Source of the DNA: Sminthopsis crassicaudata
Lineage: Eukaryota
Assembly: GCF_048593235.1 (NCBI RefSeq)
Contig: NC_133620.1
Coordinates: forward strand, 458,271,261 to 458,335,260
DNA: 64,000 nt
Direction of reading: 5' to 3'
Positions 6,979 through 54,271 of this stretch are shown in pieces. The notes beneath the pieces are model-generated. The model worked only from the letters and a program-made list of their open reading frames with translations. It was not told where the DNA came from and made no database searches. The translations under genes and the position numbers were made by a program. How positions within the stretch are numbered: position 1 is the first letter of the stretch; each line of letters starts with the position of its first letter.

Positions 6979-7317
6979 ATGGAGAGGGAAGCGGAGCGGC
7001 AATTGACACCGCCCCCGCCGCAGTCCCCGCCGCCAGTTCTGTTCCTGCCCCTGGCTCGGCAGAAGTCACAGGAAGAACTGCCGTTGGGGAGCTTCGAGGA
7101 GGAGCACTACGACTGCTACGATTACTACAACCTGCGGGAGAGTCCGCTCCGCGGGCCCGGCTGGAGCAAGGGCCGCACCCGGCGGGAGCGGGAGCTCCGC
7201 ACCAACCGCCCGGTTCCCGCGGGCCATGAGCGGAAGATCGCCCAGAAACTGTACAACAGTCAGCGGAAGCGGCGCCAGCACCAGCTGCAGCCCCGGCCTC
7301 GCACCCGCCTCTGCTGA
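6979..7317 (+). CDS. NUPR2: Nuclear protein 2, transcriptional regulator (NUPR1-like), 112 aa, single coding exon
   Basis: ORF contains FEEEHYDCYDYYNLR...SKGRTRRERELRTNRPVPAGHERKIAQKLYNSQRKRRQHQLQPRPRTRL, matching the p8/NUPR family. It lies in a CpG island upstream of CHCHD2, as in human and mouse. Confidence 0.93.
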   Translation: MEREAERQLTPPPPQSPPPVLFLPLARQKSQEELPLGSFEEEHYDCYDYYNLRESPLRGPGWSKGRTRRERELRTNRPVPAGHERKIAQKLYNSQRKRRQHQLQPRPRTRLC

Positions 7318-17728: not shown

Positions 17729-20700
17729 ATGCCGCGCGGAAGCAGGAGCCGGACCTCCCGGGTGGCCCCACCGGCCAGGTAAGAGACGAGGCGACGCCGG
17801 GTGACGAGACCGTGGCGGGGTGGCTCCGGGGTAAAGCCAGAAGGCGAAGAACGGGAGCTCGAAGCGCTGTGACGCAGCCGGGAAGGCCGCGGGAGGAGGG
17901 GCAGCTGCTCCTTGGGTTCTCGTCGTCCCTCCTCCACTCTTCTCGCGGGCCTCTAGCTCCCCTCGAGGGCCATGTGATTCACGAGGGGGGGAGGGGAGAA
18001 AATTTCCAGCAGTTTCTTGGAGGCCCGGGCTGCGCAGTTCATCTCCCGGCTCTGGGGAGGTTGGGAGGAACGAACTAGGATCGGACCGCGGCCACACTGA
18101 CCCGGATCTTGAACGTCCGGGGCATAGGGGTGGGCCCCAGAAGGGCGGATCTCGGACCTTGTCCCGACCGTTACCACCCGCTCCCGCCCCGGGCCCATGC
18201 TTTTCCTCCCGAGCTTTTGGGCTTCGGGCCTTGATTACTCTTAATGACTCAAAGGCTGGATGAAGAAAATTGAAAAAGAAAAATCTAGTTTCAAATAAAT
18301 TGTAATGAGATTTCTGGCGTTAACACCGGGATGTAAAGTCCCCTTTCCCGCAACCCCGAATAATCATTCCTGGCCCTTCTCCCCCTCCCCCCTCCGAGCG
18401 CTCTTGTCAGTGATCTCCAGGGACTCCTCTCACTATTGGGAGAAAGCCCAAATCTCTGAGCCCATCCTGACTCCCCTCCCCCAGTTCTCTCGTCAGTGTC
18501 TGGAGCTCGCTCCCACCTCCCTCCAGCTTCTCCGAGCCGCAGCTAAAATACTGCCTCCCTGGGTGATGATTTCGGATTTATCCTCTCTGCGTCTCCCCCG
18601 CAGCTGCTTTTGCACTCCCTCCCCCGTCCCCTGCCGCCTTAGACCGACCTCTAGCTCTAAAGCAGCTGGTACGTAATAGGTGCTTAATAATAGTAGTTGA
18701 CCAAAGAAACCAATTACGTTGACTTGCGGTTATCAAAAGAAAAAACTCAGTTCATGGAAAATGAACTAAATTAAGAAGCTTAAGTTTTGGTTTTGAATTC
18801 TTGATCAGGTCCTAGAGCCAGCATCCACAGCTCCTGTTGCCCCATTTGGGGAAGGTCCTTGCCTTCCTGCTCTGCAAACGCGGGATTGCATTAGATTGGA
18901 GGACTTTGCTGCTTCCAGTCCTTTGAGCCTAAATGAAATCCACTGCCTGATTGGGTCTTGGGGCCACCCTCAGTCCCATGGGACTTGAAATACTCAACCA
19001 GTGTTATACAGGACCCTAATGATGGATGTCTCCTGCTTGCCACAGGGAGGAGAGTGGAGTTTATCTCCTCCTTGCTTTTTGTGGTTGGTTTTAAGAGGCA
19101 TGATCTGTTTTCTGCCTGAAGCTTCCAGATTGCTTTTGTGTCTCATTTCATTGAGGCTTCAAATTGCTTTATCCTATCTATCTACATAGGACGGAGAATC
19201 TTTTAAAAAGGGGGAGGGATAATCCAGTGACAGCCATTAATTGAACCCAGTTCTTGATCTGTGAACATTTTTCTTTTATACCAGAAAGATTTTTGAGGTC
19301 TTTTACTAGTATGGAGGCAAATATAATTCCTGGTTTGGGACTAGAGGTATAAATACTGTTTAATATGATTATGCTTTTAAAAAGTTTTTTGTCAATATCT
19401 TTCATTTTTATATCCCCTATACTTTCTTCTTTTCATAACTTAATACAAAATCACCATAAAACCCCAGTGTTATTGGGGTTTGCATAGCAATAATAAAAAC
19501 AGATGATATTTTAAATAAAGATGCAGGTTATTCAAATGGTAAATGTTCAAGACTCTTTCCCTTTGCTAATTATCTTGGTCATTTTGTAATAGCATCTTGT
19601 CTGTCTTTTTACAGTCGGGCACCCCCCATGAGAGCTGCACCTGCACCAGCAGCCCACCCTCCAGCAGCAGTCCCACCATCTGCAGTTGCAGCTCCTGCTG
19701 CTGCACCCAGGCAGCCGGGTTTGATGGCCCAAATGGCTACCACCGCAGCTGGAGTAGCAGTGGGCTCGGCTGTGGGCCACACTATTGGTCATGCCATTAC
19801 TGGTGGCTTCAGTGGTGGGAGTAATGCTGAGCCTGCAAGGCCTGACATCACCTACCAGGTAAATATGTCCAGAACATGCTATGTACATGCCTCATTCTTC
19901 TCCAGGACTGTCTTATTTCCTTATTCAGTAAGGGGCATTTATCAGAGGGCTCTGGTCATGTTGCACCTAGGATCGTGAGGTATCAGACTGTATTAGAAAT
20001 TAAACTCATTCATCTTCCCAAAAGGGGAGATTTTAGAGGTTAGTCCTGAATCATTTCCTCAGTTTCCTTTTGGATTGATCTTTAAGTGCTAATTGTCTTA
20101 GAGCTTTCAGCCTTTTCTTGCCTTTGAGTCTTTCCCTTACTCATATGTTCATTCTTCTGTGTTTTGTGGCCTTAGTTGTTCCTCCCTCTCTCTGTCTCTC
20201 TGTGTCTTTTGTAGGAGTGTATAAAACTCCAATCTAGCCATCATCTAGTCTAATTTAAAAAAAAGAAAATTGTTTGGGTGGTGATCTTTGAAAAGTATTT
20301 GCTCAAGATGCCTTTCTCCAGTATCTTAAGTGTTGTCTTTTCAGGAGCCTCAGGGAGCCCAGCCAGGGTACCAGCAGCAGCAGCAGCAGCAGCAGTTCAG
20401 CCCCTGCCACTATGAGATGAAGCAGTTCTTGGAGTGTGCCCAGAACCAGGGCGACCTCAAGCTATGTGAGGGCTTCAGTGAGGTGCTGAAGCAGTGCAGG
20501 TTTGCAAATGGTAAGCGCCAATGCGCCCTGGGGCCTCCCTTTCTTGTGTTCTGAAGGCATTGTCAGGAGGGCTGCTGGGAAGCCCAGGGCCTCTCCTAAG
20601 GAGAGCAAGCGCTCTGAAAAGAAGTGATAGCAGACTGCTTTTGTGAGAGCTGCCTTTCTGCCGAGCACAAGGAAAGCTGAGCTGTCAATAGAAGGGACTG

Positions 20701-20988
20701 CTGAGGGCAGGATGGGTTCCCTGTGGTTAAGGTCCTCAAACTGAGCCTCTTATCTTCTGTGCAGCCTTCTGAGGCACGGGGGCTGTATGACTAACCTCAT
20801 TATGCCAGGGAAAATGGGGGCTCAGATCAGATGACATGCCTATGACAGCACACAGTGAGATTTGAACTGGGATCTGCTGGGCTCTCTGCCACCACCTGGC
20901 CAACTGTGTGGGTTATGATAGTGCTAGAACTTCTGAAGTTGTTAGTAAATGTAATATTCATCTTTTTTCTTTTGTAGGATTAGCCTAA
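17729..20988 (+). CDS. CHCHD2: Coiled-coil-helix-coiled-coil-helix domain protein 2 (mitochondrial), 156 aa
   Basis: Exons 17729-17778, 19615-19858, 20345-20510 and 20978-20988 total 471 nt, all introns GT-AG. Protein reads [17 protein letters not shown]...[34 protein letters not shown]...CX9CX9CX9C...ANGLA*. AATAAA at 21298-21303. Confidence 0.97.
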
Positions 20989-21914
20989 TTGAGACCTTCA
21001 AAAAGAAGAATGAAAAAAATCAACTCTGAAGACCAATCTAATTTAACATAATTCATAATTGGTAGTGAAATGATAAAGAAAGATGAGACCATCCCTACTT
21101 TGTTTCTTTTGTCTATTTATCACTAATGTCCTTTTGTTTCAGAACAACCTTCAAAAGAAAGGTATTCCCACTGGAGAGGATAACATGAGATGATATAAAA
21201 TGTTGCAATGAGGCAAATGCTTGTGTTCTCATCTAAACGAATGATTGTTATGTGAGCTCTCAGCAGAGTGGCTTGAGTCATTGTGGCTAGCAATTCAAAT
21301 AAAGTTATTTCCTCCTGGATATGACATCTGTAAGTGTGGAAATCAGAACTTGATTTATCTTTGGTTGGGGGAAAGGGTGTGATAAAAGCCTTAGAAGATA
21401 CCAGGTGGTCCTTGTTCCTTATTAAAAGTTTATTTAAAAGTTTGGGGCAGAATTGTTCAAAGGAGAGAGAGCTAGTGGAAGCTTTGTCACCAGAGAAAGA
21501 GAAATGGATCTTTAAAAACCTATGAATATTGGGTGGATTCCTTTGTTTTCATTCCTGTAGTGGTGACTTTTTATTTCTGAGATGAGGCTCAGTCTGTGGA
21601 TCCTGCCATTCACACGTGGCTTTTGTGAGCTTTGTCCAGCCCATGAGATCACAGGATCAGCAAGAAAACTGATTCTGTTCTTGTCAGCTTGTTGGTGATG
21701 AAATCCAGACGCAAGTGGTTTGTAGGACAGGCTGTTCTCTTAAGAGGTGCCAGAACTGCTTTGGCTCGATTGACTTGTTTCTTGGGTTTCCTGGAAATAA
21801 TCAGGCATTAGGTGGAAAATGGGATTTTTGTTGGGATCTAGGAAGGTGGGGGGGGGGAACAGTAGGGGAGAGGTGTAGGGGAAGAACAGTGTCATTGGGT
21901 CAGAATATGTAATT

Positions 21915-22760
21915 TAAGAAGATTGGAAAGGTAGGAAGGGTGAGGTTACAAAGGGCTTTGAATGCCAGACCAAATGCTCTTTTAGTGACTCCTGTGGACA
22001 TTAGGGAACCTGAGCAGAAGAGTGATACAGTCTGACCTGTGCTTTAGGAAAATGACTGCCACGGCCAAGTGGAGTGGGCAGAATACTCCAGGCAGGCTCT
22101 CCCCTCAGTTTGGACACAAGCTGATGGGGGGACTGCAGAAGGGGCCGTATGGAGCCCAGAAAGAGTGAGTTCCAGTGAAATGGAGGGTGGAGATTTTGAG
22201 CTTGGGGGAAGGGGAGGATGGTGTTAGTTTCTACAATAAAAGAGTGGTGGGGAGGGCCTGCAAGAGTGTAATGTAGGGCAAAAGAGAGTGTCTGGTTTTA
22301 GTCATATTTAAGATGTATCTTATTGGACACCCAGTTCAAAGTGTCTAAAAGACACTTGGAAATAAGAGGCCAGAGGAATTGGGTCGGGAAGGGTAGATCA
22401 GCATTAATCCATGGGAGCTGATGAGGTCAAGTGAAGTAGTTCAGAAGCAAAGAGGGCCCTGGGCAGAGCAGGTTTCTGAAGGACACCCACCATGAGAAAG
22501 GGGTCTGTAAGGGGATCCTGCCACCCCCATGGGCTGCTGCAGAACAGACCAAGAAAAGGATTTAATGGATAACTGGAGAGAGCTGGTCAGAGGCCAGATA
22601 AGGAGATGTGGAGTGGGAAAAGTGGAGGCACATGCTGAAGAGACCTCTAGAAGTAACTGGTGGAAAAGTCAAGGAGAGTTGGATGGGAAGAGGTCTAGCA
22701 GACCTTGAGGGTGCTGAGACTGAGCGGGGTAAGCCAAGCTTCTGTTCAGGGAGCCAGGAG
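21915..22760 (-). mobile_element. L2 LINE fragments
   Basis: aagggctttgaatgccagac...gagtgatacagtctgacctgtgctttaggaaaatgact is typical of antisense L2. Confidence 0.6.
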
Positions 22761-25700
22761 CCTGTTTGGTCCCAAGACTCTGAACTGGAGGCCCCTTAGA
22801 GGCCGGCAGTCCCTGGGGAGCAGGGAGGCTGTTGGAGCCCTTCATGAAGGTAGGTGTGCTTTCAGAGGCCCAGGATGCCCACTGGCACTTTGTGAACTAG
22901 CCTCTCCTGGGGAATCTGGCATAATGTAGCAGGGCTGGGCACTGGATGCAGGAGAGAGCCACTGTTAAAACTCTCTCCTTGCTTAGAGAATTGTCCAAAC
23001 TGACAATCTCCCATCCATAACATCTGCCATTAACCCAATCTTGAATTCATCTTGAACAAGGTAAGGTTAGGACAAGATGGGGAACATTCTGTGCTGCAAA
23101 CAAAAACCACTTAATCCAATCTCAAAAGCACTCAGTTCTTCCTTTGGCTATTTCCTTAGAGACTGGTTTTTTAAATTCAGTGAACATTTAGGTGTTTACT
23201 GGATGTGTGCCACTGTGCTAAAGTGCTGGGGTTATAAGAAAAAAGGAAGCTCGGACGAGGACATGGGGGCACAGGATGCCAGGGGTTGCTAAAGGTGGGG
23301 GCATCTGTTACAAAGGTAGGGCCAGGAAGAACTGCAGCTCATGACTCACCCCTTCAAGGAATAGGGGAAACTGTTCTCAGACTTTAGGACATGGGTCTAA
23401 ATTTGGTTGCCACCTTTAACCCATTTTCTCTGCACCTGTCATTTTAACCTTTGCTTGACTTGTTTAGGGAAGAGTCTGGAAAGGCCTTTTGAGAAATTAG
23501 TATTTCAGTGGAACAAAAAGGGTTTCTAACATGCTTTCCACATGAGTGAGAGGGCCCAATCTTTAAGGACAGCCACCCAATTGTAATGTGTGATATTATT
23601 CCATGGCCTTGATTGATTGGAAAAGCTTTTTTCTGAGAAACAAGTCGATGTTGATGGACTCTGGACTTGCTGTCCCAAATTAGGCCCCTCATGCAGATTA
23701 TATCTCATGAAGAACTCAGAGAAAGCAGGGAAACACTGGCTGGGCTGACTGTTTATACAGGCTTATGTGTTGTGTCCTCGTGGAGGTGCATGTGGTCAGG
23801 GAACAGACTTCATTTTTAAGGACCCTGTCCTGGAAGGCAGCTCCCTGCTCTCCCGACAGGCCCTAGAGGAGGGCCAGAGGTGTCGTGGGAGGAAAAACTT
23901 CCTGAAGATAAGAGCTAGCCAAAGGTAGAGTGGGTGACCTAGGAGGCGCTCTGCCTGGGCACAGATGGGGTGGTTTGCAGAAGGGTCACATTGCGGCCCT
24001 GAGTTAGCCTCCAGAATCCCACTTGGAAGGCTGCACCATACCAACCAGCGGTAAGAACCTGGGCATCTGGTGATAACCCACATCTACTCAACTTGGCCGC
24101 TTGCCCGGACGTCAGCTCGAGGAGCCATTCCCACAAACGGCTGAGTGAGGAAGCGAGGCAGCACTGGGAACAAGTGACTTGGATTTGAATCCAGCACTGT
24201 CCCTGGGTGTGTAATGCTGGGTGAAATAGGGGGACGTTGAGATGAACAAAATTAACTTATGGCAAATTCTGAAGGAGCCAAGAGACATGCAGATAAATAC
24301 ATTCTCCTTGTATAGGGGAAGTCAGGATGTGGGCTCAGATCCTTTAGTGACGCACATTTTTGCTAAATGTCATTTTCTCCCATGGAGTGAAGGGCTTGGG
24401 TCAGATGGCCCGAAGAACATGGGGTGCTTCCAACTTTTAAGTGTAAGCACCCACTTGTAAGGGCTTAACTGGAGCTTTCCTTCCATCGGTTCTTTTGCCC
24501 TTTATGGGTGTAGGAGTTCAGGTGTTGTCTTGTCTTCCTCTCTTGGTACGGGAGCAAAGGCAAGGAGAGATTTACTTCTTCATCTTCTTAGCCTTGCACA
24601 CAATAAAAAGTGCTTGCTAACCGACAACCTACTTAGGGTCCTGAATTTACACAAACTAGAATACATGTTAAAGACTAATAATGTTCCTGACTTCATCTGG
24701 GGTTTCCTTGGGAAAGATAGTTCTCGGCCACTTCCCTCTGAGGCAAAGGGTGAAATGACTTGTCCAGCATCACACAGCAGGATCTGAGGATCTGAATGCA
24801 GGTCCTCCTGACTCCAGGCCCAAACTCTATTGTGCCACTTAGCTGCCCCCAGTCACTATAATAGCTTCCAGTTGTAGAACAATTTCAGGGTTATAAGTAT
24901 TTCTCCTCACCCAGAGGGAGGTGATTATCATGATTATGTGTTACATATGCTATCATGTGCATTACATGTTGTCACGCATGTGTATGTGTGAAATATCCCC
25001 ATTTTGTATATCAGGAAAGAGGCAAACCAAAGTTAAGCGACTTCTCAGGACCACACTGTTCGTAAATGAGAACTTGAACTTGGGCCTTGATGATACTCTT
25101 AACATGCTTCTGTTTGCCTAAACAGTCTGGTATAGCAATTCTGGGTTCCACTCTCTCCTTTGTAACACAAATTCTCTAAGGATTTAAGTCAAATCATTAA
25201 CTTGTTCAGCCATTCCCCATTCGACGGGCATCCATTCCTTTTCCAGTTCCCTGCTACCACAGAAAGAGCGGCCACAAACATTTTAGACGTGTGGGTCCTT
25301 TTCCCTCCTTTGTGATTTCCTTGGGAAACAGACCCAGTGATCAAGCCATTCACTTTCCCTCAACCTCAGTTGCCTCATCTGTACCGGGAATTGGAGGGTC
25401 TGGATGCTCCGTGATGATCCGCATCCCCTTTGTGCCTAGAACCCAAGCTCTAAGCTCCAAATGGAAGGCAACCCAGGAGGTAAATCAATGGCTGAACAAG
25501 TTAATGTGCTCCCCCATCTGCAGGAAGCCGGGATGGGGCCCCCGAAGAACTTCTCCCCAAAGAGAATTCCTGAAACTGCTGTTCCTGATGGGGAGGAGGT
25601 CAGCACCCCGAGACCTTGGTGAAGCAAGAGGTCATTTCTGCTTTGTCTTGGGGAGCATCTTTGGGCCCCAAGCAAGTTAAAGCTCCTTAAATAGCTCAAG

Positions 25701-25975
25701 TACAAAGCTCAGATGTGGGGAGGGGGGGGTTCAGAGGGCAGGGCCTACACCATGGTGGCTCAGGGACTCTGTAGGCTGGTAGAGCCCAAGATTGCATTTG
25801 TGCAGACAGGAAGGAACAAGCTGGGTGGGGAGTCTGGGAGAGCGCAAAGTTAGGAGGGTTTTGGGACACTGCTGTCTAGGGAGCAACAGAAATTCTCCGA
25901 TATTTAGGAGTCTCTGGCAGATGTTTAACAACTGACTCAAAAAACCCCAAAGAAAACAAAACAAAAAAACACACT

Positions 25976-26120
25976 TTTTTCCCTTGCTGAGGTAATTGGG
26001 GTAAGTGACTTGCTCAGGGTCACACAAACAGGAAGTGTTCAGTGTCTGAGACCAGATTTGAACTCGGGTCCTCCTGAATTCAAGGCTGGCGCTCTATCCA
26101 CTGCGCCACTCAGCTGCCTC
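25976..26120 (-). mobile_element. WSINE1-type SINE
   Basis: Reverse head ...ctctatccactgcgccactcagctgcc; flanked by TSD-like aacacactttt. Confidence 0.88.
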
Positions 26121-29100
26121 CACAACACACTTTTAAATTTAATTTGAATTAACTTCTCACTTTGTCTATGCAATAAAAAATATAATAAATGAAGCCCCAA
26201 TTTGTAGTATCTGCTGATTTCTGAGGTAAGCTTACTGACCCGCTGTCCTGAGGCGGTTCCGGTCCACTCTAAGACAGTTGTCCTTTCTGTTCCTTCTGCT
26301 GGGAGGTCCCCAGGGTCCCTGCAGCGAGGGGCTGGCCATGACCTAGTAAGGATCATCCCCAAGTACAGGGTTCCCTCAAGTGGAACTGGGGAGGGGGAGG
26401 AGAGGAGTCACAGAGGAGGCTCCAATCCCCAGGCTCCTGGGGCTGGGGGCGGGGGCAGGCCGGTGCCATCACCTCAAGGGAGGGGTTTGGGACCCAGATG
26501 TGGGTTTGGGGGGGCGGTTCTCCGGATGCCAAGGACTCCTCCAAGAATCTCTATTTCTGATTGCAGACGCGCTCTTAGTAGCAAAGGGTCACAGATTAGA
26601 ACCTGAAGAGGGCGGGATCCTTTCATGTCACACAGAGAGATGGTGACTTGTGGGAAGACTGGAATCCAGCTGCCCCCTGGGTAACAGGCCCTGGGCTATG
26701 GGCACAAAGCCTCTGAGGTCACCTTGCTTGGCCAGGCAGGGCCCCCTGGGTTCTCCCCGCCAGGGGGCGCCCCTGGGGGTTCCCCTCTCCCCAGCTTTTC
26801 CCTTCCCCCATCCTTGCCTGCAGCTTCCAAAGGCCCTCAAACCAAGCTGGAGGGCTCTGTCTCAAGAAGGGCCTGGCTGGTCCTCCGGGGCACCCAGACA
26901 GCCCTCGGGCCGGAGCCTGTGACCCGAGACCAGAAAATCCCCAGGAGGGGCTGTTTGCTTCCCTTTGTGGAGGGGAGAGGAGTTACAAGCCCAGTCAGGG
27001 GTCAGAGGTCCCGCCCCGCCCCCACCCTGTCCTCCCTGCCCTAGCCTAGGATTACATTCAGTGCTTCATAAATGCTCCTGGCCTTTCCTCCAAGCCCCTT
27101 GGTATTAAGGAGTCAGAGGACGGCCATCTTGTTGAGACCCAGAGGCAAAGACCAGAAAGGCCTAGTTCACGTGCAAGTGTGGGCAATGCTCTTTATTCCT
27201 GCTTGAGTGGCACCGGGCACGGGCATGCTGACAACCAGCAGGTACAAGGTCCCTGGCCAGGCTCAGGGGGCGCCATGTGGCAGTCAGACCAAGGCCTTGT
27301 CCCTTGCGCTTCTGACCAGGCCGCCCCACACTGAGGAATGGCCTGTCTCCCCCAGACCAGGCCATCATCCTCTCTTGCTCAGGGTTGATATGCCAGCCGC
27401 CCATTCGTGTAACTTCTCGGGGACAGCCAAGTCCTGACCAGGGGCCTAAGGAGAACCACGGGCAGCCTGGCTCTCCCTCCAGCACAGCCATAATTTCTGG
27501 GGACCCCCATTGTGGCCAGGTTTCCCCCCAGCCTCTTGGCAGGTCTGTCCAGCCCAGATGGTGGAGCATCTTCTTGGGGAGCAGCACTTAAAGCACTTTA
27601 TGAGAAACGAGACCAGCTGGGGGGGGGGGGGAAGGAAGCAGGGCCCTTCTCTCCTCCTCCCCAGATGATTTTACATGTCTTTTATGGAAAGATCACAAAA
27701 GTATCAAATATTGCTGGGGAGTGGCTATAACCACTGAAGGGCCTTTGCCTACAAGGATGGCATTTTCTTCCAAACCAGTAGATGGCACAAGGGTGAGAGC
27801 TCAGATACCGGGGACTGAGGGAACAAACCTTTAGATACCTGCTGTGTGCCAGGGATTGTGCTCAATTCAAGCTTTATAATGTCTTTATCAAGCTCTTCCC
27901 AACAGCTTTGGGAAGGCAGCGCTGCAATCATGTCCATTGTGTCGTGGAGGAACTCAAAGGGAATCAAGGCTGAACTTGGGCCTTCTGACCCAGCTCTGCC
28001 ATCTACTTGTGAGCCCCAAGTATAGATCACCTGCATGATCGGACCCAAGCCAGGGTTGGGGCTGCCTCAACCTACCCTCCCATGCTCAGTGCCTTGAAGA
28101 ACGATGCAGGCCGCATGCTCCCTGCTGAGATCTCTAAGGCCACTGAGGCTGCCCCCCCCCCACGTCGAGTGCAGAGTCCTCCCTCGGTCTCCTGACTTGT
28201 AGGCATAACAGGGGGTTGTGTGACTAAAAGCTATTTATTGGGCAGCTCCTGTGACCTGTGGCCACCTGTTAGGATGAGGATAAAAGGCTTTCCCATTTCA
28301 AACCCAGTCTGTGCCAGCCTCTAAACCTCTCAGAGATCCCATATACACCCTTGTGAAGGATCAATGAACTGCTGGCATCCCTGCGCTCAAACCTGTCCCC
28401 CCCCACGTATGCTCCCAGAGGGTAGGGCAAAGATCCCGTTCGAGCTGGTACCAGTCACAGGACCTGCGTTAGGTACTTTTCTCTTATCTAGCCCAGCAAA
28501 GACCTGCCTATGACAGATGAGCCATTAAAGCAAAGTAGTAAAAATGAATGAGACAATTCTGACCCCCCAAGGCAGAAATGGCAGATGAGAGGCTGAGTTG
28601 CTGCCCCCCCCACCGTCCCCTGCTGCTGCTGCCTTGACTAGTCTGGCTCTTCCTGATCTCCCCCCCACCCCAAATCCTATCTTCTACCCACACATGGTGT
28701 TCTGCATAGACTTAAGGCAGCCATGGGGACTCGGAGGATAGAACTTTGCCTAGCTAGACAAGCAATATATTAGCTGGTTTTATGCTGTTTCTGTTTTATT
28801 CTTGGTTTCAAAGAATGGATGTCTGAGAAAAGGTGGAATATAGTCAGAAATCAAAGTGATATAAAAACAAAGTATCAAGAATTAAAAAAAATATCAGTTA
28901 ATACATTTCATACACACTCAGGAATGAGCTCTACTATTTTACATCCAACAATTAAAAGGGCACAGCCCCGCTCCCAAGAACCCCAAGCCCAACCCACCAC
29001 AGGACGGACAAATACACTTTTGTAAGACCACATACTAAGGCAATTGGATTTTTGTCAGAATAACCTAAATAGAAAGGTTTAAGTTAAAAGCTGATAAGGA

Positions 29101-29768
29101 ATAGGTTAAAGTCAATGTGTATATAAGTTATGAGAAAGACTATAATTTGACTAATACACAGCATTACTTTTCTAAGTGCATACTAAATATCCATCAACTC
29201 TTGCTCAACACAGGAAAATCTTGGAGAGAAGATACAAACTAACAATCTACTTGCAACAAAAGCTTTTATGCTTTAGGGCTTGCACTAGAACAGAAAAGTG
29301 GTGGCAGAAGGTAGAATTCATCTAAATTTTGAGAAACCTTTCATGCCCCCTTTGTGTCTAGATTTAGACAGAACGAAGCCACGGGAGGGGTCAGACGCTG
29401 TAAAAGCTAACACTACTCTATGGAACACAACAAAGAAACAAGCAGGGTCTACACCAGCTACTACATTTGACACGAAGCCAGGCAGGACAATAATCGATTG
29501 GGTAAAAAGGACCGCAGCTTTAATCATAGGCCTCAGTGCAATTAAAAAAAAAAAATAAATACTGTAATCCATTTTAGAATCTTACATTTGAATAGGGGCC
29601 AATAATTTCAGTTTTAGGGACAAGGTTTACTGCAACAGTAAGAAAAACAATTATTCTTTGGGAAATCCTTTGGCAGCTGGGAAGAACAACCACCACTAGC
29701 CACACGTTGCGGTTCTTTCTGTAGGACCTTGTGATTCCACTGCTTACAGTGGAAACCTGAGATTCCGC

Positions 29769-32700
29769 TCAACCTTTCAGAGAAGACATCCCAGCGCGCA
29801 TGATCTCATCAACCAGGAGGATATTGGTGGCAATCACAGTGCTGGAAGGAGATTGGAGGCATTAAGAATCAGGAAAATCAATTTTCATTTCTTGGAACCC
29901 AGAATTTCTTAAATTTGCCTAAGGATACAATTGTCTGATCCCATTTCTGCTGTCCTAGTAACTTTATTTTAAATTTGATCAAGACATCTTCTTACAAACA
30001 TGCCATTTGGAGAAGAATTACATAGAAAATAACAGATGTTTCCTTTAAATATAAAAAAAAACACAAAAAAAAAAAAAAAAAACAAAAAAAAAACAAAACC
30101 ACAAAAACCTACCCTCACCCACCCCTCATTCATGGACTCGATTATTCATTCAGATCTTCCCCACTTACCAAGAGTGAAGCAACTGCTTCTTGACACAATA
30201 GTTATCCCAGATGCCGGCTTCAGCAGCAACAATGGGCTCACCTGCAAAGGAAACACACTGATTGCCTTAACTAGGCTGCTGCCTTCCCTGGTGACAAGGA
30301 ATACTTCCTGCGTAATACCAGCTACCTTTTGGGTCTCAAAACTATTTACTCATGTACTTAAAGCTCATTCTTAAGCTGGAGGTTGTTTAACTTGTTTTGT
30401 CAAATATTTTTGACAAGGAAATTTCATTATGATTGATTTCCTTTGTAATCCTCTTTTATGCATTTTAAAATACTGTTTGAAAAAAAAACTTTACCAAAAT
30501 CTATCTTCACTGCTATTAAATTACTCAACAATGTACATTTTGAAATTAAGGGTAAAATAAACTGTCGAATATTCATTGTTTGAAGAAATAAACTGTCTAA
30601 TATTCATTGTTTGAAGGACTTCTTGGTACCCATGAGCATCACCTGAGTGACACTGAGAAGCCAATGAAAAGACGCTCCTACTTAGGCTCAATTTTCTTAC
30701 CTGTCTTTAAGTCAACACCAACAAGTTGTCCTGATTCTGCATGTTCAGCCTGTATCTTAACTAGTGTTTCCTGAAGGTCAAAACCAGAGTTCTGAGCAAG
30801 AACCTTCAAAAACAAAATAAAGACATTTAATCTTCCTAAACACTAAAGGCAAATGAGAGTGAGAAAGTGAGTTCTTATTACATTTGTCAAGCAAAGTGGA
30901 ATATGTATGAGAATGTACACCTCAAGGTAGTAAAGATCTCCAGGTAGTTAGGGGGCATACTAGATAAAAGGTTGGACCTGGAAGCAGATCTGAATTCAAA
31001 TCCCACCTCAGACACTTACTCAGCATGTCTGTTTGCTTCCTTATGGGTGAAATGGGGATAATAAGAGTATTTACCTCCCAAGGTTGTGGTGAGGATAAAA
31101 TATTTCATAAAGTGCTATGCAAACCCGAAAGCACTATATGTAAAGGGCAGTTATTATTTCAGGTCATTTAACAGAACATTCTCCCTTACAGGTGAGGAAA
31201 ACAATACCGAGAGCCAGCCTTAAAGCCAGGAAGCTCTTGATTCTGATACTCATAAATCAATTGTTAATTCACACAGGGAGAAAATCCTCCCTGAAAACTA
31301 CCCAGCTCAATGGGATCACAAGTTCAAGCAAAAAATAAAACCAAACCCCTTTCTGCCTCCCGCTAATAGGCTTAGAACAGGGCTGTAGCAAAGCCGCCTG
31401 AGATGGAGGCCTCCAATCTGAACCTGGTTGAGGGTGGGGGTGGGGGCTGCACTGAGGATTCCTAGGTGTGACAAGAGTGGTTTCTTATGGGCCACACTGT
31501 GAACTGGGCAAGCAATAATTGACTCAAAGAAGTATTTTAATTTTCATCAAACCTTCTCTGGATGACTTGTCTGATACAGAGTTTGCCCTGAGAAAAAAAA
31601 CACATGGTAGGAGCTCCTTAGGATACCCAGTCAGCCTGGTGGACCTTGGTTACCACTTTACAGACAAACCACATTAGACTCAAACTAGGCTCAAACACAA
31701 CAGGTTTCTAAAGATTAATGATATAAACAAACCATCAGTGGAACTCCCACACACCTTGGGAATAATGAGCAGTGCGTCAGCAAAAGCTTGGACTCCAAGA
31801 CGGGCTCTTCCCTTAACATTGGGCTTATGTTTAATGAGAGCTTCAGCGATGGCAACTTCCACTGCACCAGCCCCAGGTACCACACAGCCTGGCAAGGGGA
31901 CAAAGACACAAGAGGATGTGTCACCATGGAGGGTGGAATAAAGGACAGAGAGGTACAAACAAGCCACGTGTCCGCTATAGTATGCACTGTTGTTCTGGAG
32001 GAACCTCAGGACAGCCTCACAGACTGTAGGGACCCATGCTCTGAGCCCCTGGAAGAAATGGGGCCGCCATGTCTGCTGTCAGACCATTGGCTTCAAGCGC
32101 TATGATCTTGGGTCGTTTTTCCATTTCTCACGCTATTGTCCAAATCAGGGCAAGCACCTGTGATCCCCTTCCGTAATGGCATGCCAATGACAACCCTTGG
32201 CATCCTTTCAAGACGTTTCAGAGGAGAACTTGCTTTTGCATGGTGTCTGGCTGTGTTGACTACTGACAAAGAGAACACAGTATTCGTCCATGCACTTGAA
32301 GGGTAAAAGGATTAAACAAGTTTACCATATACCATCCATTCATCAGCCCAGTTCTGGAAACAAAGAGATGCCCATTGGTTTGAAGATGGCAAACCAAATG
32401 TGGCGTGAATGTCAAAGGGAGGAATCCAACCATGGGGAGGCATGAGAAACACTTGTGAACTGATGCTGAGTGGAGTCGGCAGAACCAGAAAAGCACGATG
32501 ACAATGGAACAACCCAAGACAGAAATGCAATCTGTGGCCATGTTCCCAAAGGAACAACATGACAGCACATCCCCCAGCCCCCAGCCTTTGTGGATCCACT
32601 GCTCTTATGGAATTGTCTTTCTCCCCCCTGAGGGAGTGAAGATCTAATGGGAAATCAGAGCGACAAAAAGCTGCCCATGGCGAAGCTCACCATCTTCGAT

Positions 32701-35700
32701 GGCATTCTTGACTGCTCGCAGGCCGTCTCTCACTGCATCCTTGATCTGGGTGATCGTGTGCTTATTGGGTCCCTTGATCAACAAGGTGACAGATCGAGGG
32801 TTGACACACTTCTCGATGAAGGTGAACTTCTCTTCTCCCTACAACATTCAGCATGTCAGAAAACAGCAGAAAGGCAGCACCAGAGCTCTTGTTTTCAGAG
32901 GAAGCTGAGACAAATGCTTGAATGACGCTTAGTCTGGCACTCGGATCAGACAACTCTTGTGTCTGGTCATGAAAACACAGAGGCTGCATATTAGGTTATC
33001 TGCTCTCACCAGTGTTGTCTTTTCAGAATGTATTTAAAACAGCAATTAAAGTTCGAGTCAGGGTTATTATGCAGTAGGCAGCTGTCATCCAGAACAAACT
33101 GAATTTAACTTGGTGTCAGCTGCCATTTAGAAGAAAGATCTATTCTAGTGCTATTTGCAAAAAAATCCAAGAGGCCACAATTCTTAAAGATGTGGCAGCT
33201 GCACTTTGCCTGAAGGACCCCAAATAGGGTGATATGAGAAAAAATACTACACACAATGGAAGGCCAACGGCTTAGCCTCCTCTTCTCACCATGAAGCCTC
33301 TATTACTTCTGAAGTTATTCCATGGCCACATTCCTAGTCTGTCATATGCTAGGTCTAACATGCACCTGTATTTTCATAAAAAGCATTTTTAGTTCAAGGG
33401 ATACCTTTTATCTTCAATGATCAAATGTTTATTCTATTTTTTTTTAAAAGACAGTATAACAGATGGTGTCCAACCTCAAATTTAATGTTAGATTTGACCA
33501 GTCTCTACAGATTAGGGACCAGAAAGTCACTGAAATATACATGAAATGACTGATCCCAATATTTCCTCACCAAAATCAATGTAATCACAGGTCTGCACAA
33601 GAGAAAGTTTTGTGAAATTTCAGATGCAAAAATGAAACTTGAAATAATCAAGAATGAAAAAATATTACTTACTCAAAGAGATACTTACTAGTGTGTATTC
33701 ATAGACAAGTCCTGCATGTCCCAAACAGTCAGGATTTAAGTCATCTAGAGAATTCATAGCCATTCCACCACATGCAAGAGTCAACCTGAAATAAGGAAAA
33801 TTTACTTTATAAATTCCGTGGCAAGAATTAATTTACTCCCCTCCATACCCAATTCATTAGCATAATTAATTTGGGGGAAGTTTTCGTTTGTATTAGGACT
33901 GTAATTTTTAATGTTCAGAATGCTTCCAATTCCCCCTTGCAGGAGTTGTATAGATAAGAATTGTAAAAACACTTCCCACAGTGCAGTAAGGGTATTATAA
34001 TCATTTACATAGAGGAATCAGCATCCTTTTAGTCCGTTCACTCTCAGGTTCAATAGACTCAATTATGCCCTCTTGCCAAGAATTTTGTCTTTAGGCTCAA
34101 AATGCCCAGGGCTGTACAGACAAAAAAATTTGGAAAAGCTGTAGATAAAAAAATCATTTATTTTTTGTAAAATTTGCATTACGCAAATGTAATTTGGCAG
34201 GCATGCAGTCACGGATGGTTCATTCCATCCAAGCCCTGAAGCTGCACCAGGTGCAAGGATTCAGAAAGCCTCAGGAGGGGAGGGGAAGGGCTACAGAATG
34301 GGTTGTGTAAAATCCCAATCATACATAGTAAAAGTAAATTCAGATCACTCAGCCAATCCGCCCAAACTTACCTCTCCATATTTCTTCTTTTTGCTCTGCG
34401 GAGAGCTACTATGCCTTCTTTTGCAAGAGCATGTAAAGAAAATGGGTCAATTCCCTGCAATGATTAAAAAAAAATCTTAAAATGGGTTGGACTATGTAGA
34501 TAACTGACATCCACAGCATTCAAGTTTTGTTCTCACCTTTTGATTAATAACAACAAATCCTTTGTCTGAATCACCACACACTTTTCTTTTCAGTTCTACT
34601 ATTTTCTTTACTCTATCTTCAATGAATTTCCTTTCTGCTTTTACTAGTTTCTCTCTTTCCTCCGCACTTTTGTAAAAAAATCCAGAATTCACTTCTCTAA
34701 AAAACATAAGAATTAAAATTATTAAAAAAAAAAGAAAAAAAAAAAAAAATCAAGAAAACGAAATTCATACATTCGTTTCTGAAAATTCAAATTCCATAGG
34801 ACCACAGATTCAGGGTTGCCAGATAGCTTACGTTTTTTCATATTCTAATGATACATTGCACGTAAGAATGTAAGCATCTTCTAGTCTTTTCTTCATATCA
34901 GGATGGCGGGCACCATGGTCCAGAACCAGCCCTCTGATCAACCTATTAAAATAAGCATTTCCTTGTATAAGTATCTTATACTCTATCAAGCAATAAAATA
35001 GAAGAAAGTATATCCAAGTGACAAAATTTTAAATTTGAGCTGATCCCACGTACTAAAAGTAACTGGGTTTTTCTTGCAATTGGGGTTAAGTGATTTATCC
35101 AGGATCATATAGCTATGAAGTGTTAAGTGTCTGAGGTCAAATTTGAACTCAGGTCTTCCTGACTTCAGGGCTGGGGCTTTACCCACCGCACCACTTAGCT
35201 AACTGTCCCTGCAGCTAGATTTTAACAAGACCCCCCTAAGGGAGAGGAACGAACATTATGATTGCGCCTCCCCCACAGATGCCATTCTTCTTTTGATCTA
35301 CCAATGGACTGGGTTTTATGACAGGTTCTCCCCACAATAACTTTGGCAAAGGCTTGCTCCTTTATACCATTACCCCAATGAACAAGATGAGGTGAGATCT
35401 CTCAAGACAGTTGTGAAAATCGAGTAAGGCTTCATCTACTTCAGAGTTTTGGGTAGGCCTGAAGGACTTTGAAGATTGAGTCAAGGGCATACTTAAGTCC
35501 CTTTCATGCTATCCTCCCATGACATCATTTTCTCCCTATTTCAGTCAAATATGGACAACTATGTACTTATTGATCAAGTTCAATTTCTTGGGTAGATTTC
35601 AAGTTTAGAATGTAAGATCCTCAGCCAATGAGGATGAAGGTCAGTGGTGGGAGGGGGTATTTGCCTTAGGGATAAAAAGTGTTAACCCTGCCCCAGAAGA

Positions 35701-38700
35701 CACTCCCTCCCAATAAACTTTGCTTTGCTTCTAGAGATCTCTCCAGCTTTTTTTATTAAATGGTGATCCCTCACCATTTCTGTACCACACACCAACAATG
35801 CTGAGGGTGGGCTCAGCATATTATACACAAATTTACTTCTTGAAAAATCATGCCAATCAACACATTAGCAAAACTTGAATATTATGTGATATATAAGATT
35901 CAGCTATGCAATATACCTATTCCATTATTCACCCAAATATGTTACTAAAAAAGAGGCAAAAATATGCCTCATGGAATATCTGTTCTGAAAATTTCTCTTC
36001 AAAATTAAAGCATTTCAACTAATCTATAAATTCAGGAGTTAAATTATAATAATCAGCATATAAAATTTAAATTTTAAAATCTTTAAGACAATAAAATGCC
36101 AGTCAATATTACCAACAACTTTTTAACTCACGTTGTGTCAGTTTCCGATTTATGCTTCATCTCCATGATTTCTACCATGAAAAGATCAACAGGTTCACCT
36201 GGTCTTCTGACAGCCAGAATTGAGTCCACCACTGCCTGCAATAGAAGGGGAGGGGGAGGGGGGGGACGGACACAAAGATAAAATAAGGCAGATGCCTGCA
36301 TTTTAACTCAGTCCCAACTTTTCCCTTTTCTTATAGATCAATTTTTATGCACACAGGTCAAATTAAACTTCAAAAGAAATCTCTGTATTTGTGTACGTAT
36401 CTACAAAGCTCCAACTGATGGTAAGAAGACAAGAGGTTTGAACCTCATGTGAAACAGAACTCTAATACCACACACAGAATGGCACGTAGGACAGTGGCAG
36501 AAGGATCAAATGAATGCTTTGCATTATTTTCAATTTTACTGAATCATCTCCAATATTTGTTTTTACTGGCAAATTACAGACAGTAGTGGTGGAGCACTAA
36601 GTTCACGGGTCCTAAAGACCCATTCTGGTTTCCACTTTTCTAATTTACAAACGATGTCTGCCTGCTTCCTTCGTGTGGTTTTTGGGCAGCTCCAACGAGC
36701 TAATTTATGATCTATCGTGACAATCTGGGTACTCCACGCGCCACCTACCTCTGTCAGCACGTCGGCCAGGTCAGCATTGACTTTGGTGCGCAGGGATGTT
36801 CGGGCAACATCCATGAGGATTTCTCTATCAATCTCTTTGCTTATTTTGATTTGATCCAAGACTTCAAGGGCCTTTGTCTTGGCAGCTTCAAACCCTTCCG
36901 TTATGATTCTAGGGTGCAGACCCTGGTAACAACCACCATAAAGCCAACCATTAGCCTCCACAGGAGTTAAGTCTGGCTGTTACGGCAAAGCTTTTACCAT
37001 TTTTGTATGGAATGTGAATTTCTAGTTATTGCTAAATCTTAGAAATGTGCTGCCCTTCTGAATACACATAAAAGGATAGACAATCCTTCCAATGCAGAGG
37101 AAAAGAGCAGATGTTATTCTAGCACAGACTAGAAGCCAAGGGAACTACAAAGCACGCTTGGGTGTTCTCTGTGCAAATAGTAAAAAAAATAAGGGACACC
37201 CTCCACCTCCCAATTTTGTTGATGCTTTGGGGTTAAGCATATTTTAATAAGTTATCTGGAATTCCACTGACATTTAATAGTCACTTAGAAGACAATCTCC
37301 TTTTTTGTAAATAAAATTTAGAAAATCTACGGCACGGAAAGAACCTCAGGCTAGTGCTTATGGTCGTCTAGGACACGAAGTCCTATTTTCCTCCTTTTTT
37401 ACTAAATTGGTTAAATGTACAAGAGGTTCGGATCGGTCTCAATAGAAGCAATGAGGGCAAAACAAAAGCCCTGGTCCACTCCCTACTTTGCTGATTCTTT
37501 TCCTTTTGCAATCCAGTTAAACATATCCCCAGAATCCTTTCATTGGATTTAAAAAATTAGAAGACATTAATTTTTCTTTAGTCAGATAAGGGGCAAATCA
37601 CGATTAGCCCCTTAACTCCTGCCAAGAGTGAGCACAGAAAACGTTTCCTATTCAGGAGAAAATACCACAGGAATGTGACAGTCATGTGTACTTCGGAGAT
37701 GTAGAGGTCCGCCTGCTTCAGCAGCTCCCCGATGATGAGAACGTTGGAAGTGGTGCCGTCGCCAGTAATATCATCCTGCGCTGTAGCTACTTTTGCAATC
37801 AAGGAGGCCGTGGGGTGTTGAATTTGCTAAAAAGAGAAAGTGGAAATGATCCGTTTAAGAATGGAAATAAAAGAATAAATAAAGGAACTTGTAATCATTT
37901 CTACCAAATAACAAAAACAACCCGCCCCAACATCCTGCTTTGAAGAGCTGTCCTCATACAGAGGAAATATGGGACCAAGAACCTCAAAAGCGAGTATCAA
38001 CAGATGATTGTTACCTAAGACACCAATTAACACAGAAACAAGAAGAATCCCGTTATACAAAACTCTCAGAGGAGGCTTAAGTTTTTTCTGTTATTTCGGT
38101 ATTACTGAATGGACTTCGGCTAACTTAGATCCCTGGTAAGCGGATTCCCTTTCTGACCACGTGAGCTCCACTTCTGCGAGTGAATTACCAACTCTGCATT
38201 ATTTCATGAAGATAGGTCGGACCCGCGGACGCCTTTGGGGGTCACCCCTCCCACTCCGGGCCATTCCTCACCATCTCGTGTAACAGCACGTTGCCATCCT
38301 TGGTGAGCTTGATGTCTCCGGCGCCAGAAACAAGCCTGGGGTAAGAGAGACCAGACCCACGCGTCAGAGTCCCCCAGGGCGGCCCCCGGCGAGCCGGAAC
38401 CCACGCGCACACGAATTCGGGGCGCCCCGGCTTCGTCCGGTCTTTAAGCCACGACCCGCGGCACAGCCGAGGACGGCCCTCCCCTCCAACAAGGCCGAGA
38501 GCGGACAGAGCCGGGGATCGCTCGTCCACGTGAGCCCGGGAAAGCCGGAAGGCTCGGACCGGATGCTGGGCCTGGTGGACGGCGGCCGCCGAGGCCCCTC
38601 CCGTCCCCTCCCCCACCCTCGCCCGGCGCGTGCTCCCGTCCCCAGGGCCTCACATCTTCATGGTGCCCTTGGGCCCCAGGTTGGTCCTCAGCACGTCCTG

Positions 38701-38790
38701 CAGCCCTCGGGCCGCGCTGATGTTCACGGCCAGCGCCGCCTGGGCCCGGGCCACCTCGGCTTTGGGATTCAGCGCCTTCACGGCCGACAT
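29769..38790 (-). CDS. CCT6A: T-complex protein 1 subunit zeta (CCT-zeta), 531 aa
   Basis: 14 exons: 38654-38790, 38272-38335, 37692-37826, 36749-36922, 36132-36235, 34832-34942, 34537-34696, 34372-34454, 33689-33785, 32691-32838, 31755-31888, 30701-30803, 30169-30241, 29769-29841. They total 1596 nt in frame with GT-AG introns. Protein runs [46 protein letters not shown]...GDGTTS...[11 protein letters not shown]. Confidence 0.96.
32156..32293 (-). ncRNA. SNORA15: H/ACA snoRNA SNORA15 (ACA15) in CCT6A intron 10
   Basis: Minus strand reads GCATGGACGAATACTGTGT...ACACAGCCAGACACCATGC, then H box AAAAGCA region, a second hairpin and ACA+3 nt. The 5' hairpin is nearly identical to human ACA15 as I recall it. 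Confidence 0.88.
35057..35200 (-). mobile_element. WSINE1-type SINE in CCT6A intron 5
   Basis: gcaattggggttaagtg...tttgaactcaggtcttcctgacttcagggctgg. Confidence 0.85.
37043..37176 (-). ncRNA. SNORA22: H/ACA snoRNA SNORA22 (ACA22) in CCT6A intron 3
   Basis: Minus strand reads TTGCACAGAGAACACCCAAGCGTGCTTTGTAGTTCCCTTGGCTT...GTATTCAGAAGGGCAGCACATTT, matching human ACA22 as I recall it. ACA box 3 nt from the 3' end; known host gene. Confidence 0.9.
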
Positions 38791-52800: not shown

Positions 52801-53269
52801 CTCTGTGGGAGAACCATCAGCCCCTGTGGGGGGGGGGGCTCCCCAGAGTTAGGGGCTAGCCACCCGATCCTGGGACACCCGGCACCCTCTCCTTCCGTCC
52901 TGTTAGCTTTTTAAAGCAGTTTTACTATTTCTGTGCACTGCTGCAAAAATTCAAGTGGGGGCTGAGGACTCATTCATTCAATGGCTAGCCTTTTGTCCGG
53001 GGCTTGTGGACTGATACTGTGTGAAAATCAATGAAGAAATTAGATCAACGCTTTTTAAAAAAGTCTTTTTATTTTCAAAATATCTGCGTAGCTTTAAACG
53101 TTAACCTTGCAAAGCCTTGAGTTCCAAAAGTTTTTCTCCCTCCTTCCCTCCACCCCCTCCCTTAGAAAAGCAAGTAATCTATAACTAATCCATATTAAAT
53201 CTATAATTAATTTATACTAAACAGTGCAATTCTTCTCTCTATATTTCCACAATTTAGATCACCACTTTT

Positions 53270-53530
53270 TATGTTTTATTACCATCCCTCGGTGTGTTTT
53301 ATTACCATCCCTCGGTGTGTTTTATTACCATCCCTCGTGTGTTTTATTACCATCCCTCGGTGTGTTTTATTACCATCCCTCGGTGTGGTTTTATTACCAT
53401 CCCTCGGTGTGGTTTTATTACCATCCCTCGGTGTGTTTTATTACCATCCCTCGGTGTGTTTTATTACCATTCCTCGGTGTGTTTTATTACCATCCCTGGT
53501 ATGTTTTTATTACCATCCCTGGTATGTTTT
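53270..53530. repeat. Minisatellite, 22-24 bp unit (gtgttttattaccatccctcggt), about 11 copies
   Basis: Read directly from the sequence. Confidence 0.95.
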
Positions 53531-54271
53531 CTGTGTCCTGCTAAGGAGAAGCTCAGAGCAGAGAAACCTGAGTTGAGTCTTTGCCTCTGACACAAATGAG
53601 CTATCAGTGCAATCAGTCACTTGCTCTTTAACATCGTATGGATCAAAAATAATAACAAAGAGAACTGTCCTGTACGGTTCTAACCCATTGGGGACTGCAG
53701 ACAGACATGGCAAGGTGCTAGGGAGGAGTCTCGTCTGGACACTTAGGCTCCAGTGCTGCTTTTGCTACTCTGTATGTGGCTGACCTTACTCAGGGCACTT
53801 TTTAGTAAGGCCCATTTTCTCGTCTGCAAATCCTCTCAGCCATAAATGCAGAAACTTCTTTGGGAACTAGGAAAACCCCCAAAGGGTGTTGGTTGAAGTC
53901 CAGGTATTTCACAAATGCCTCCGGAGCTTCTGAAAAACTCTGGGCAGCCAAGCTGGGTTTGAGGAACACCTGGGGCACCTATGTCTCCTCCTGCTGGCAG
54001 CACCGAGCTCTCTAAACTACAGTTAAATAGAATACTCAAGTTGGTTAAACATTGGCAGTGAAAAAAAAAAATAAATAAAAATAGTCAGTGCCCAAGGATT
54101 AAAAAGACAGAAACAAAACAGGCCCTGCCCTCGAGGAGCTGACATTTCTCTTGCCCTGGTTCAGGACTCAGGAAGTAACGGAGAGGATCTGATTCCTCAA
54201 TTCAGAAAAATTCAAATATTATGATTCTTTCCCCAGTCTCTATTTCTACGCCCCTACACACACTGGCTTTG

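Follow-up and report, generated by a model that had tools for sequence, protein, structure and literature searches.

Very probable relocation of PHKG1 and SUMF2 from the CHCHD2-CCT6A interval of Sminthopsis crassicaudata

Introduction

What became of PHKG1 and SUMF2 in the fat-tailed dunnart, Sminthopsis crassicaudata? PHKG1, the muscle glycogen kinase gene (muscle phosphorylase kinase gamma), belongs with SUMF2 to the amniote block CHCHD2-PHKG1-SUMF2-CCT6A, which in human lies at 7p11.2. A preliminary description of a 64-kb stretch of dunnart DNA (here called the window) cited this order, reported both middle genes to be apparently absent between CHCHD2 and CCT6A, and proposed either that they had truly been lost, PHKG2 replacing PHKG1 in muscle, or that the pair had been translocated as one block. 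Our analysis points strongly to the interval being intergenic DNA left by an old rearrangement, with PHKG1 and SUMF2 relocated on the same chromosome.

Genes flanking the interval

CHCHD2 occupies positions 17729-21320 of the window on the plus strand, as judged from exon translations, splice sites and a poly(A) signal, with exon 1 beginning at 17729, exon 2 ending at 19858, exon 3 at 20345-20510 and exon 4 beginning at 20978; a stop codon (20986-20988) and AATAAA at 21298 follow. The exon translations are identical to the annotated S. crassicaudata CHCHD2 protein (P0548). Upstream lies a NUPR2-like open reading frame of the p8 family (6979-7317, plus strand; Pfam Phospho_p8, E = 5.5e-25), the neighbour expected in this position and likewise found upstream of CHCHD2 in a pika locus. 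The pika locus, which contains NUPR2 and CHCHD2, ends short of PHKG1.

CCT6A was placed at 28781-38790 on the minus strand from exon translations, with its ATG at approximately 38790, its last coding exon at 29772-29861, AATAAA at 28800 and a 3' UTR from about 28781. Platypus CCT6A exons match the window at 29772-29843 and 30168-30260 (tblastn), and the Antechinus annotation has a 531-aa Cpn60_TCP1 gene at the position collinear with CCT6A of the window. Two snoRNAs lie in CCT6A introns on the same strand: SNORA15 (32156-32293; Rfam RF00398, 90.6 bits) and SNORA22 (37043-37176; Rfam RF00414, 133.4 bits). CHCHD2 and CCT6A are therefore convergent, tail to tail across about 7.5 kb (roughly 21320-28780), and the exon, stop codon and poly(A) positions bear out the orientation and ungapped spacing first described.

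PHKG1 and SUMF2 are absent from the interval

The CHCHD2-CCT6A intergenic interval (21321-28780) contains no N, no CpG island and no PHKG1 or SUMF2 coding remnant; the sole run of N in the window (63769-63914) lies outside it. A cluster of high-copy SINE-like repeats at 24730-26130 (approximately 24730-24870, 25100-25500 and 25970-26130) was recognised by Logan contig depth, which ranges there from 10^3 to 10^6, and by recurrence, as repeat pieces of the interval are found many times in the unrelated loci L005-L009. Contig ends and repeat joints also fall within the cluster. Outside the repeats, the interval is CpG-poor (CpG observed/expected at most 0.36).

A regular-expression search of all six frames of the whole window for the kinase motifs HRDxKPxN, the APE context and DIWS gave no match, and the few loose DFG and GxGxxG matches are all in non-kinase contexts. 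Among 177 stop-to-stop pieces of at least 30 aa from 20900-29000, none matched Pkinase or FGE-sulfatase in Pfam, and only scattered chance matches were obtained (E of 0.0076 or higher). Exons of PHKG1 and SUMF2 from bird and platypus loci were also queried singly by tblastn, and no exon piece from either source matched the window. In the corresponding positive controls, CHCHD2 and CCT6A exons of the bird and platypus loci match the window (1e-11 to 1e-27), and bird and platypus PHKG1 exons match the marsupial PHKG1 loci L005, L006 and L007 (1e-10 to 1e-46). The tblastn result is the stronger negative, because Pfam is only partly sensitive to single exons: a bird SUMF2 exon was recovered at 1.5e-10 and a PHKG1 exon piece at 4e-7, while pieces of 31-48 aa were missed. 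Thus motif scan, Pfam and exon tblastn all uphold the reported absence, and neither Pfam nor tblastn with bird and platypus exons revealed decayed exons or a pseudogene of either gene at the ancestral site. In a DNA comparison with the platypus block, only the last exon of CCT6A and its UTR align to the interval. No breakpoint footprint was seen, as the interval and the relocated loci share only SINEs at the DNA level.

Both genes are intact elsewhere in the genome

The S. crassicaudata annotation includes an intact PHKG1 protein (P0304, 387 aa, with all catalytic motifs) and an intact SUMF2 protein (P0543, 306 aa), both from the chromosome record that carries CHCHD2 (P0548). Since the CHCHD2 exons of the window exactly match this annotated genome, PHKG1 and SUMF2 are very probably present in the genome from which the window derives. 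The dunnart PHKG1 protein matches Pkinase over residues 20-287 (2e-78) and has the complete kinase domain, catalytic motifs and C-terminal regulatory region that identify PHKG1; SUMF2 matches FGE-sulfatase (6e-82). In the PHKG1 alignment, AVK, HRDLKPEN, DFG, GTPSYLAPE and the C-terminal regulatory region are invariant, with 94-96% identity among marsupials and 89%, 85% and 83% identity of the dunnart protein to a eutherian, platypus and bird, respectively.

PHKG1 is annotated in at least seven other marsupials, among them Antechinus, Dromiciops, Monodelphis, Gracilinanus, Vombatus and Petaurus, and SUMF2 in 12 marsupial species, that is, eleven besides the dunnart. Each of the three marsupial PHKG1 loci gave nine separate exon matches spread over 8-9 kb, and the SUMF2 exons located in L009 likewise have their introns. 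We therefore rejected retroposed copies as the source of the relocated genes. No SUMF2 exon was found within 10 kb of the marsupial PHKG1 loci. A Dromiciops 'CHCHD2-like' match (L002) is an intronless retrocopy and was discarded as evidence of synteny.

Gene order in marsupials and outgroups

All four genes are found in the order CHCHD2-PHKG1-SUMF2-CCT6A in platypus (L008), and a bird locus (Pitta sordida, L003), which ends inside SUMF2, has identical order and strands for three of them; the order cited in the preliminary description is correct to this extent. Fused PHKG1+CHCHD2 gene models in a whale (P0279) show that in eutherians these two genes lie side by side on one strand. As platypus and bird keep the four-gene order, the marsupial order is derived.

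On Antechinus CM028220.1, CHCHD2 lies at 23.43 Mb (minus strand) and CCT6A at approximately 23.42 Mb (plus strand), so that the adjacency of these genes is seen in two dasyurid genera. PHKG1 is located at 18.88 Mb (plus strand), 4.5 Mb off on the CCT6A side of the old site, and SUMF2 at 118.85 Mb (minus strand), 95 Mb off on the CHCHD2 side. The two are thus 100 Mb apart, and both have been inverted with respect to their former neighbours; random reinsertion would invert both with a chance of 1 in 4. The suggestion of a translocation holds in that both genes were relocated, but not in that they moved together as a block.

The flanks of relocated PHKG1 are orthologous in dunnart, Antechinus and Dromiciops (L005 versus L006, and L006 versus L007), from which we infer that PHKG1 moved before the split of Dasyuromorphia and Microbiotheria. 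A date before crown marsupials is probable, since in the opossum annotation, too, PHKG1 lacks a called neighbour within 10 kb. In the wombat and sugar glider annotations, the 10 kb around CHCHD2 contain no called gene.

Relocation, loss or artefact

The outgroups retain the old site, and in marsupials intron-bearing orthologues occupy a new site whose flanks related species share, as is characteristic of relocation at the DNA level. Deletion of PHKG1 and SUMF2, with PHKG2 serving as the catalytic subunit of muscle phosphorylase kinase, would account for the lack of any coding remnant throughout the window, but is refuted by the intact proteins annotated on the very record from which the matching CHCHD2 protein comes, and by the annotations of PHKG1 in the six named genera and of SUMF2 across 12 species. 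Gene loss presupposes that the species' genome has no intact orthologue, and here it has one of each gene; we regard true loss as extremely improbable. Equally little credence can be given to a collapse or misjoin that dropped some 15-20 kb with both genes, which the preliminary description had named as grounds for doubting the absence. Short-read contigs do break in the repeat cluster at 24.8-26.1 kb, with thin coverage at 25.5-25.9 kb, and among the contigs listed none bridges 25320-26080, where support comes from the Antechinus alignment. However, positions 10383-30758 of the window are collinear with positions 48-23495 of the Antechinus flavipes locus L001, an independent assembly from another genus, and the interval aligns to it at 75-82% identity through the repeat cluster with small indels only. 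In the Antechinus annotation, CHCHD2 is followed 9 kb on by CCT6A, with no gene called in between; contigs of four independent studies span 22501-25319 and 26080-28500 at single-copy depth; and PHKG1 and SUMF2 are present at other sites, whose flanks are orthologous in three species. Assembly error does not explain the interval. Least credible of all is an ancestral marsupial order, with PHKG1-SUMF2 entering between CHCHD2 and CCT6A outside marsupials. Nothing in the analysis favoured it, and the same insertion would be required at least twice; against it stand the identical order and strands in platypus and in the three genes reached in bird, and the PHKG1-CHCHD2 adjacency of the whale fused models.

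How the two genes may have moved

In the rearrangement that we favour, an ancestral mammalian order CHCHD2> PHKG1> <SUMF2 <CCT6A would have been altered in the marsupial lineage at the DNA level, with PHKG1 and SUMF2 taken to two new positions within their chromosome and CHCHD2 and CCT6A left behind, tail to tail. The mechanism may have been nested inversions, occurring in pairs and reusing breakpoints, by which each gene would be inverted and deposited at the segment's far end. Segmental duplication to other sites, followed by removal of the original pair in a single deletion and involving no inversions, is a less likely course, although one to be taken seriously: it fits the retention of all introns in both relocated genes and the clean resealing of the old site with flanking genes in their original orientation. 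Against it, though not decisively, no locus read has a second copy or pseudogene trace, and the finding that both genes are inverted, one to each side of the old site, is predicted by nested inversions but not required by duplication and loss. More doubtful still is the broader proposal that the CHCHD2-CCT6A block is a reused fragile site, from which the two genes were excised separately in the marsupial stem, each inverted and dropped on either side, with the flanks resealed. The present arrangement would then be the footprint of two nested-inversion pairs with exact breakpoint reuse, or of one multi-break event. In primates, this block has been a source of segmental duplications.

Implications and comparison with known systems

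This is an ordinary marsupial-specific change in gene order, and it would imply no change in muscle glycogenolysis. A false lead is thereby removed: marsupials keep the catalytic subunit of muscle phosphorylase kinase, and substitution by PHKG2 is needless. The change might be used as a rare genomic character and offers a small example of closely spaced breaks within one gene block. Our literature search found no paper on the relocation of PHKG1 and SUMF2 in marsupials, which can be read from public annotations.

The window preserves the order and strands that NUPR2, CHCHD2 and CCT6A have in the amniote block, including SNORA15 and SNORA22 in CCT6A introns. The two middle genes, by contrast, are missing, and the flanks are 7.5 kb apart in the window and 9 kb in Antechinus. 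A new genomic site is common to retrogene relocation, as in the Dromiciops copy of CHCHD2, and to PHKG1 and SUMF2, but the latter have introns; in keeping their exon-intron structure over 8-9 kb and in staying on the ancestral chromosome, strongly conserved, they resemble intron-bearing genes moved within a chromosome by evolutionary breakpoint or gene-transposition events. They differ from such events in that two neighbours went to separate destinations, one 4.5 Mb to one side and the other 95 Mb to the other, and in that the old flanks came together again with their orientation unchanged, for which at least three closely spaced breaks are needed.

Gene content of the window

CHCHD2 (+) and CCT6A (-) are convergent in the window, with about 7.5 kb between them (21320-28780). 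The first exon of CHCHD2 begins at 17729, the second ends at 19858, the third spans 20345-20510 and the fourth starts at 20978, with a stop codon at 20986-20988 and an AATAAA at 21298; CCT6A has its ATG near 38790, its last coding exon at 29772-29861 and an AATAAA at 28800. The only run of N in the window is at 63769-63914; orientation, spacing and the lack of a gap are thus as given in the preliminary description. SNORA15 (32156-32293, -) and SNORA22 (37043-37176, -), both well over the Rfam gathering score, are intronic snoRNAs expected for CCT6A as host gene. An NUPR2-like ORF at 6979-7317 (+) matches Pfam Phospho_p8 (5.5e-25). A tandem DNA repeat occupies 53220-53590 (+), where each of the three forward frames gives a recurring FYYHPSVCFITIPRCVLLPSLGV-like peptide; the adjoining DNA at 52-53 kb is rich in GC.

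PHKG1 and SUMF2 are absent between CHCHD2 and CCT6A

A regular-expression search of all 64 kb in six frames found no kinase motifs in a kinase context. Each of the 177 stop-to-stop pieces of at least 30 aa in 20900-29000 was run against Pfam on its own, without a match to Pkinase, PK_Tyr_Ser-Thr or FGE-sulfatase; a few scattered matches to other families all had E of at least 0.0076. As Pfam proved only partly sensitive to single exons, detecting a bird SUMF2 exon (1.5e-10) and a single piece of a PHKG1 exon (4e-7) but missing exon pieces of 31-48 aa, we turned instead to tblastn with exon pieces from real loci of the bird Pitta sordida and of platypus. CHCHD2 and CCT6A exons from these species match the window at 1e-11 to 1e-27, and their PHKG1 and SUMF2 pieces have no match in it. 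This negative result is meaningful, as the same PHKG1 pieces find every exon of marsupial PHKG1 loci (1e-10 to 1e-46). The interval contains no CpG island (CpG observed/expected at most 0.36) and has only SINE-like repeats in common with the other loci. No part of PHKG1 or SUMF2 is present in the window, and the absence noted in the preliminary description is confirmed.

Nor is the interval an assembly error. Window positions 10383-30758 are collinear with the Antechinus flavipes CHCHD2 locus at 75-87% identity, with small indels only across the whole interval, and in the NCBI annotation of that species the next gene after CHCHD2 is CCT6A (531 aa, Cpn60_TCP1), 9 kb on. Logan contigs of S. crassicaudata from four separate studies give uniform single-copy coverage of 22501-25319 and 26080-28500; their breaks are confined to high-copy repeats at 24.8-26.1 kb. 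None of the Logan contigs listed spans 25320-26080, a stretch supported by the Antechinus alignment. The collinear locus and the single-copy depth in four studies together argue against an assembly collapse, which the preliminary description had considered.

A short SINE-like element at 25970-26130 is present in extremely many copies (contig depths sum to >10^6 in DNA runs), and each of the marsupial loci retrieved contains it many times over. Over 26150-28260, contigs from two other studies (X5 and X7) depart from the window at about 38 sites in 2.4 kb, with several small indels common to both; they represent a divergent haplotype in intergenic DNA.

Both genes are intact elsewhere in the genome

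Exons 1, 2 and 3 of CHCHD2 in the window, when translated, match exactly within the S. crassicaudata CHCHD2 protein (P0548), including an AAPAAAP stretch that is different in Antechinus and Tasmanian devil. A bird C-terminal PHKG1 exon was searched against a representative library, followed by residues 137-417 of a full-length match. This second search lists PHKG1 for Sminthopsis (P0304, 387 aa), Antechinus, Dromiciops, Vombatus and Petaurus; Monodelphis and Gracilinanus are found among the members of its protein cluster. P0304 and P0548 share one record of 478,676,348 bp. The kinase domain of P0304 is complete (2e-78), all catalytic and C-terminal regulatory residues are present, and the protein has 94-96% identity with other marsupial PHKG1, 89% with one eutherian and 85% with platypus. 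For SUMF2 the query was a stop-free stretch of 204 aa from the platypus gene, of which the exon part alone was scored; it retrieved SUMF2 from 12 marsupial species, including Sarcophilus, Antechinus and Sminthopsis (P0543; FGE-sulfatase, 6e-82), the last again on the record of P0548. True loss, one of two readings offered previously, is therefore ruled out by two intact, annotated genes on the record that carries CHCHD2.

In the Antechinus PHKG1 model (P0316), residues ~293-303 read SSGSPAMPFFP vs YVVQEVRHFSPRGKF in all other species, and the model is 3 aa shorter. The normal exon is matched by tblastn at L005:16785-16898 in the Antechinus PHKG1 locus, so the difference appears to come from a displaced splice site in the model rather than from a real change. 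One 90% protein cluster (of P0301) mixes PHKG1 and CHCHD2 proteins, a database artefact that can mislead name look-ups; fused gene models such as whale P0279 are probably what joins the two.

Relocation of PHKG1 and SUMF2

In platypus, CHCHD2 (+), PHKG1 (+), SUMF2 (-) and CCT6A (-) lie within 26 kb; the first three have the same order and strands in Pitta sordida, and the whale model, which fuses Pkinase and CHCH domains, places PHKG1 next to CHCHD2 on the same strand in a eutherian. The order given in the preliminary description thus holds for all four genes in platypus and for the first three in the bird, and the marsupial order is derived.

On Antechinus CM028220.1, CHCHD2 (-) is at 23.43 Mb with CCT6A (+) just below, PHKG1 (+) lies at 18.88 Mb, 4.5 Mb past CCT6A, and SUMF2 (-) at 118.85 Mb, 95 Mb past CHCHD2; compared with the neighbour whose strand it once shared, each relocated gene is now inverted. 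Introns are retained in both, which excludes an origin as retrocopies. Relocation, the second of the earlier readings, is thus correct, but the two genes no longer stand together as a block. In Antechinus, Sminthopsis, Dromiciops and Monodelphis alike, PHKG1 has no other called gene within 10 kb, and no SUMF2 exons were found in the 10-kb marsupial PHKG1 flanks. Noncoding DNA flanking PHKG1 aligns collinearly in Antechinus and Sminthopsis, and likewise in Sminthopsis and Dromiciops, so the move of PHKG1 predates the split of their two orders; the opossum gene, without a called neighbour within 10 kb, suggests that the move is of marsupial-stem age.

Antechinus SUMF2 (L009:21165-28029, -) lies tail to tail with, and 3 kb from, a gene whose 1503-aa product has a kinase domain after its ankyrin repeats and is putatively TEX14-like. 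A CHCHD2-like copy in Dromiciops gliroides (L002:10001-10465), intronless, with an open 154-aa frame and far from any called gene, is a retrocopy.

The strands and sides seen in Antechinus would fit two pairs of nested inversions, with one breakpoint reused in each pair. Each gene would have moved to the distal end of an inverted segment and stayed there in inverted orientation, with the order and strands of all else restored and CHCHD2 and CCT6A brought together. Under random reinsertion, both genes would be inverted with a 1-in-4 chance. Duplication followed by deletion of the original PHKG1 and SUMF2, or a single multi-break event relocating them, could also have given the present arrangement. 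The gene-order change is readable from public annotations, and we found no paper describing it. The absence of PHKG1 and SUMF2 from the CHCHD2-CCT6A interval is an ordinary case of a conserved gene block broken up in one lineage.
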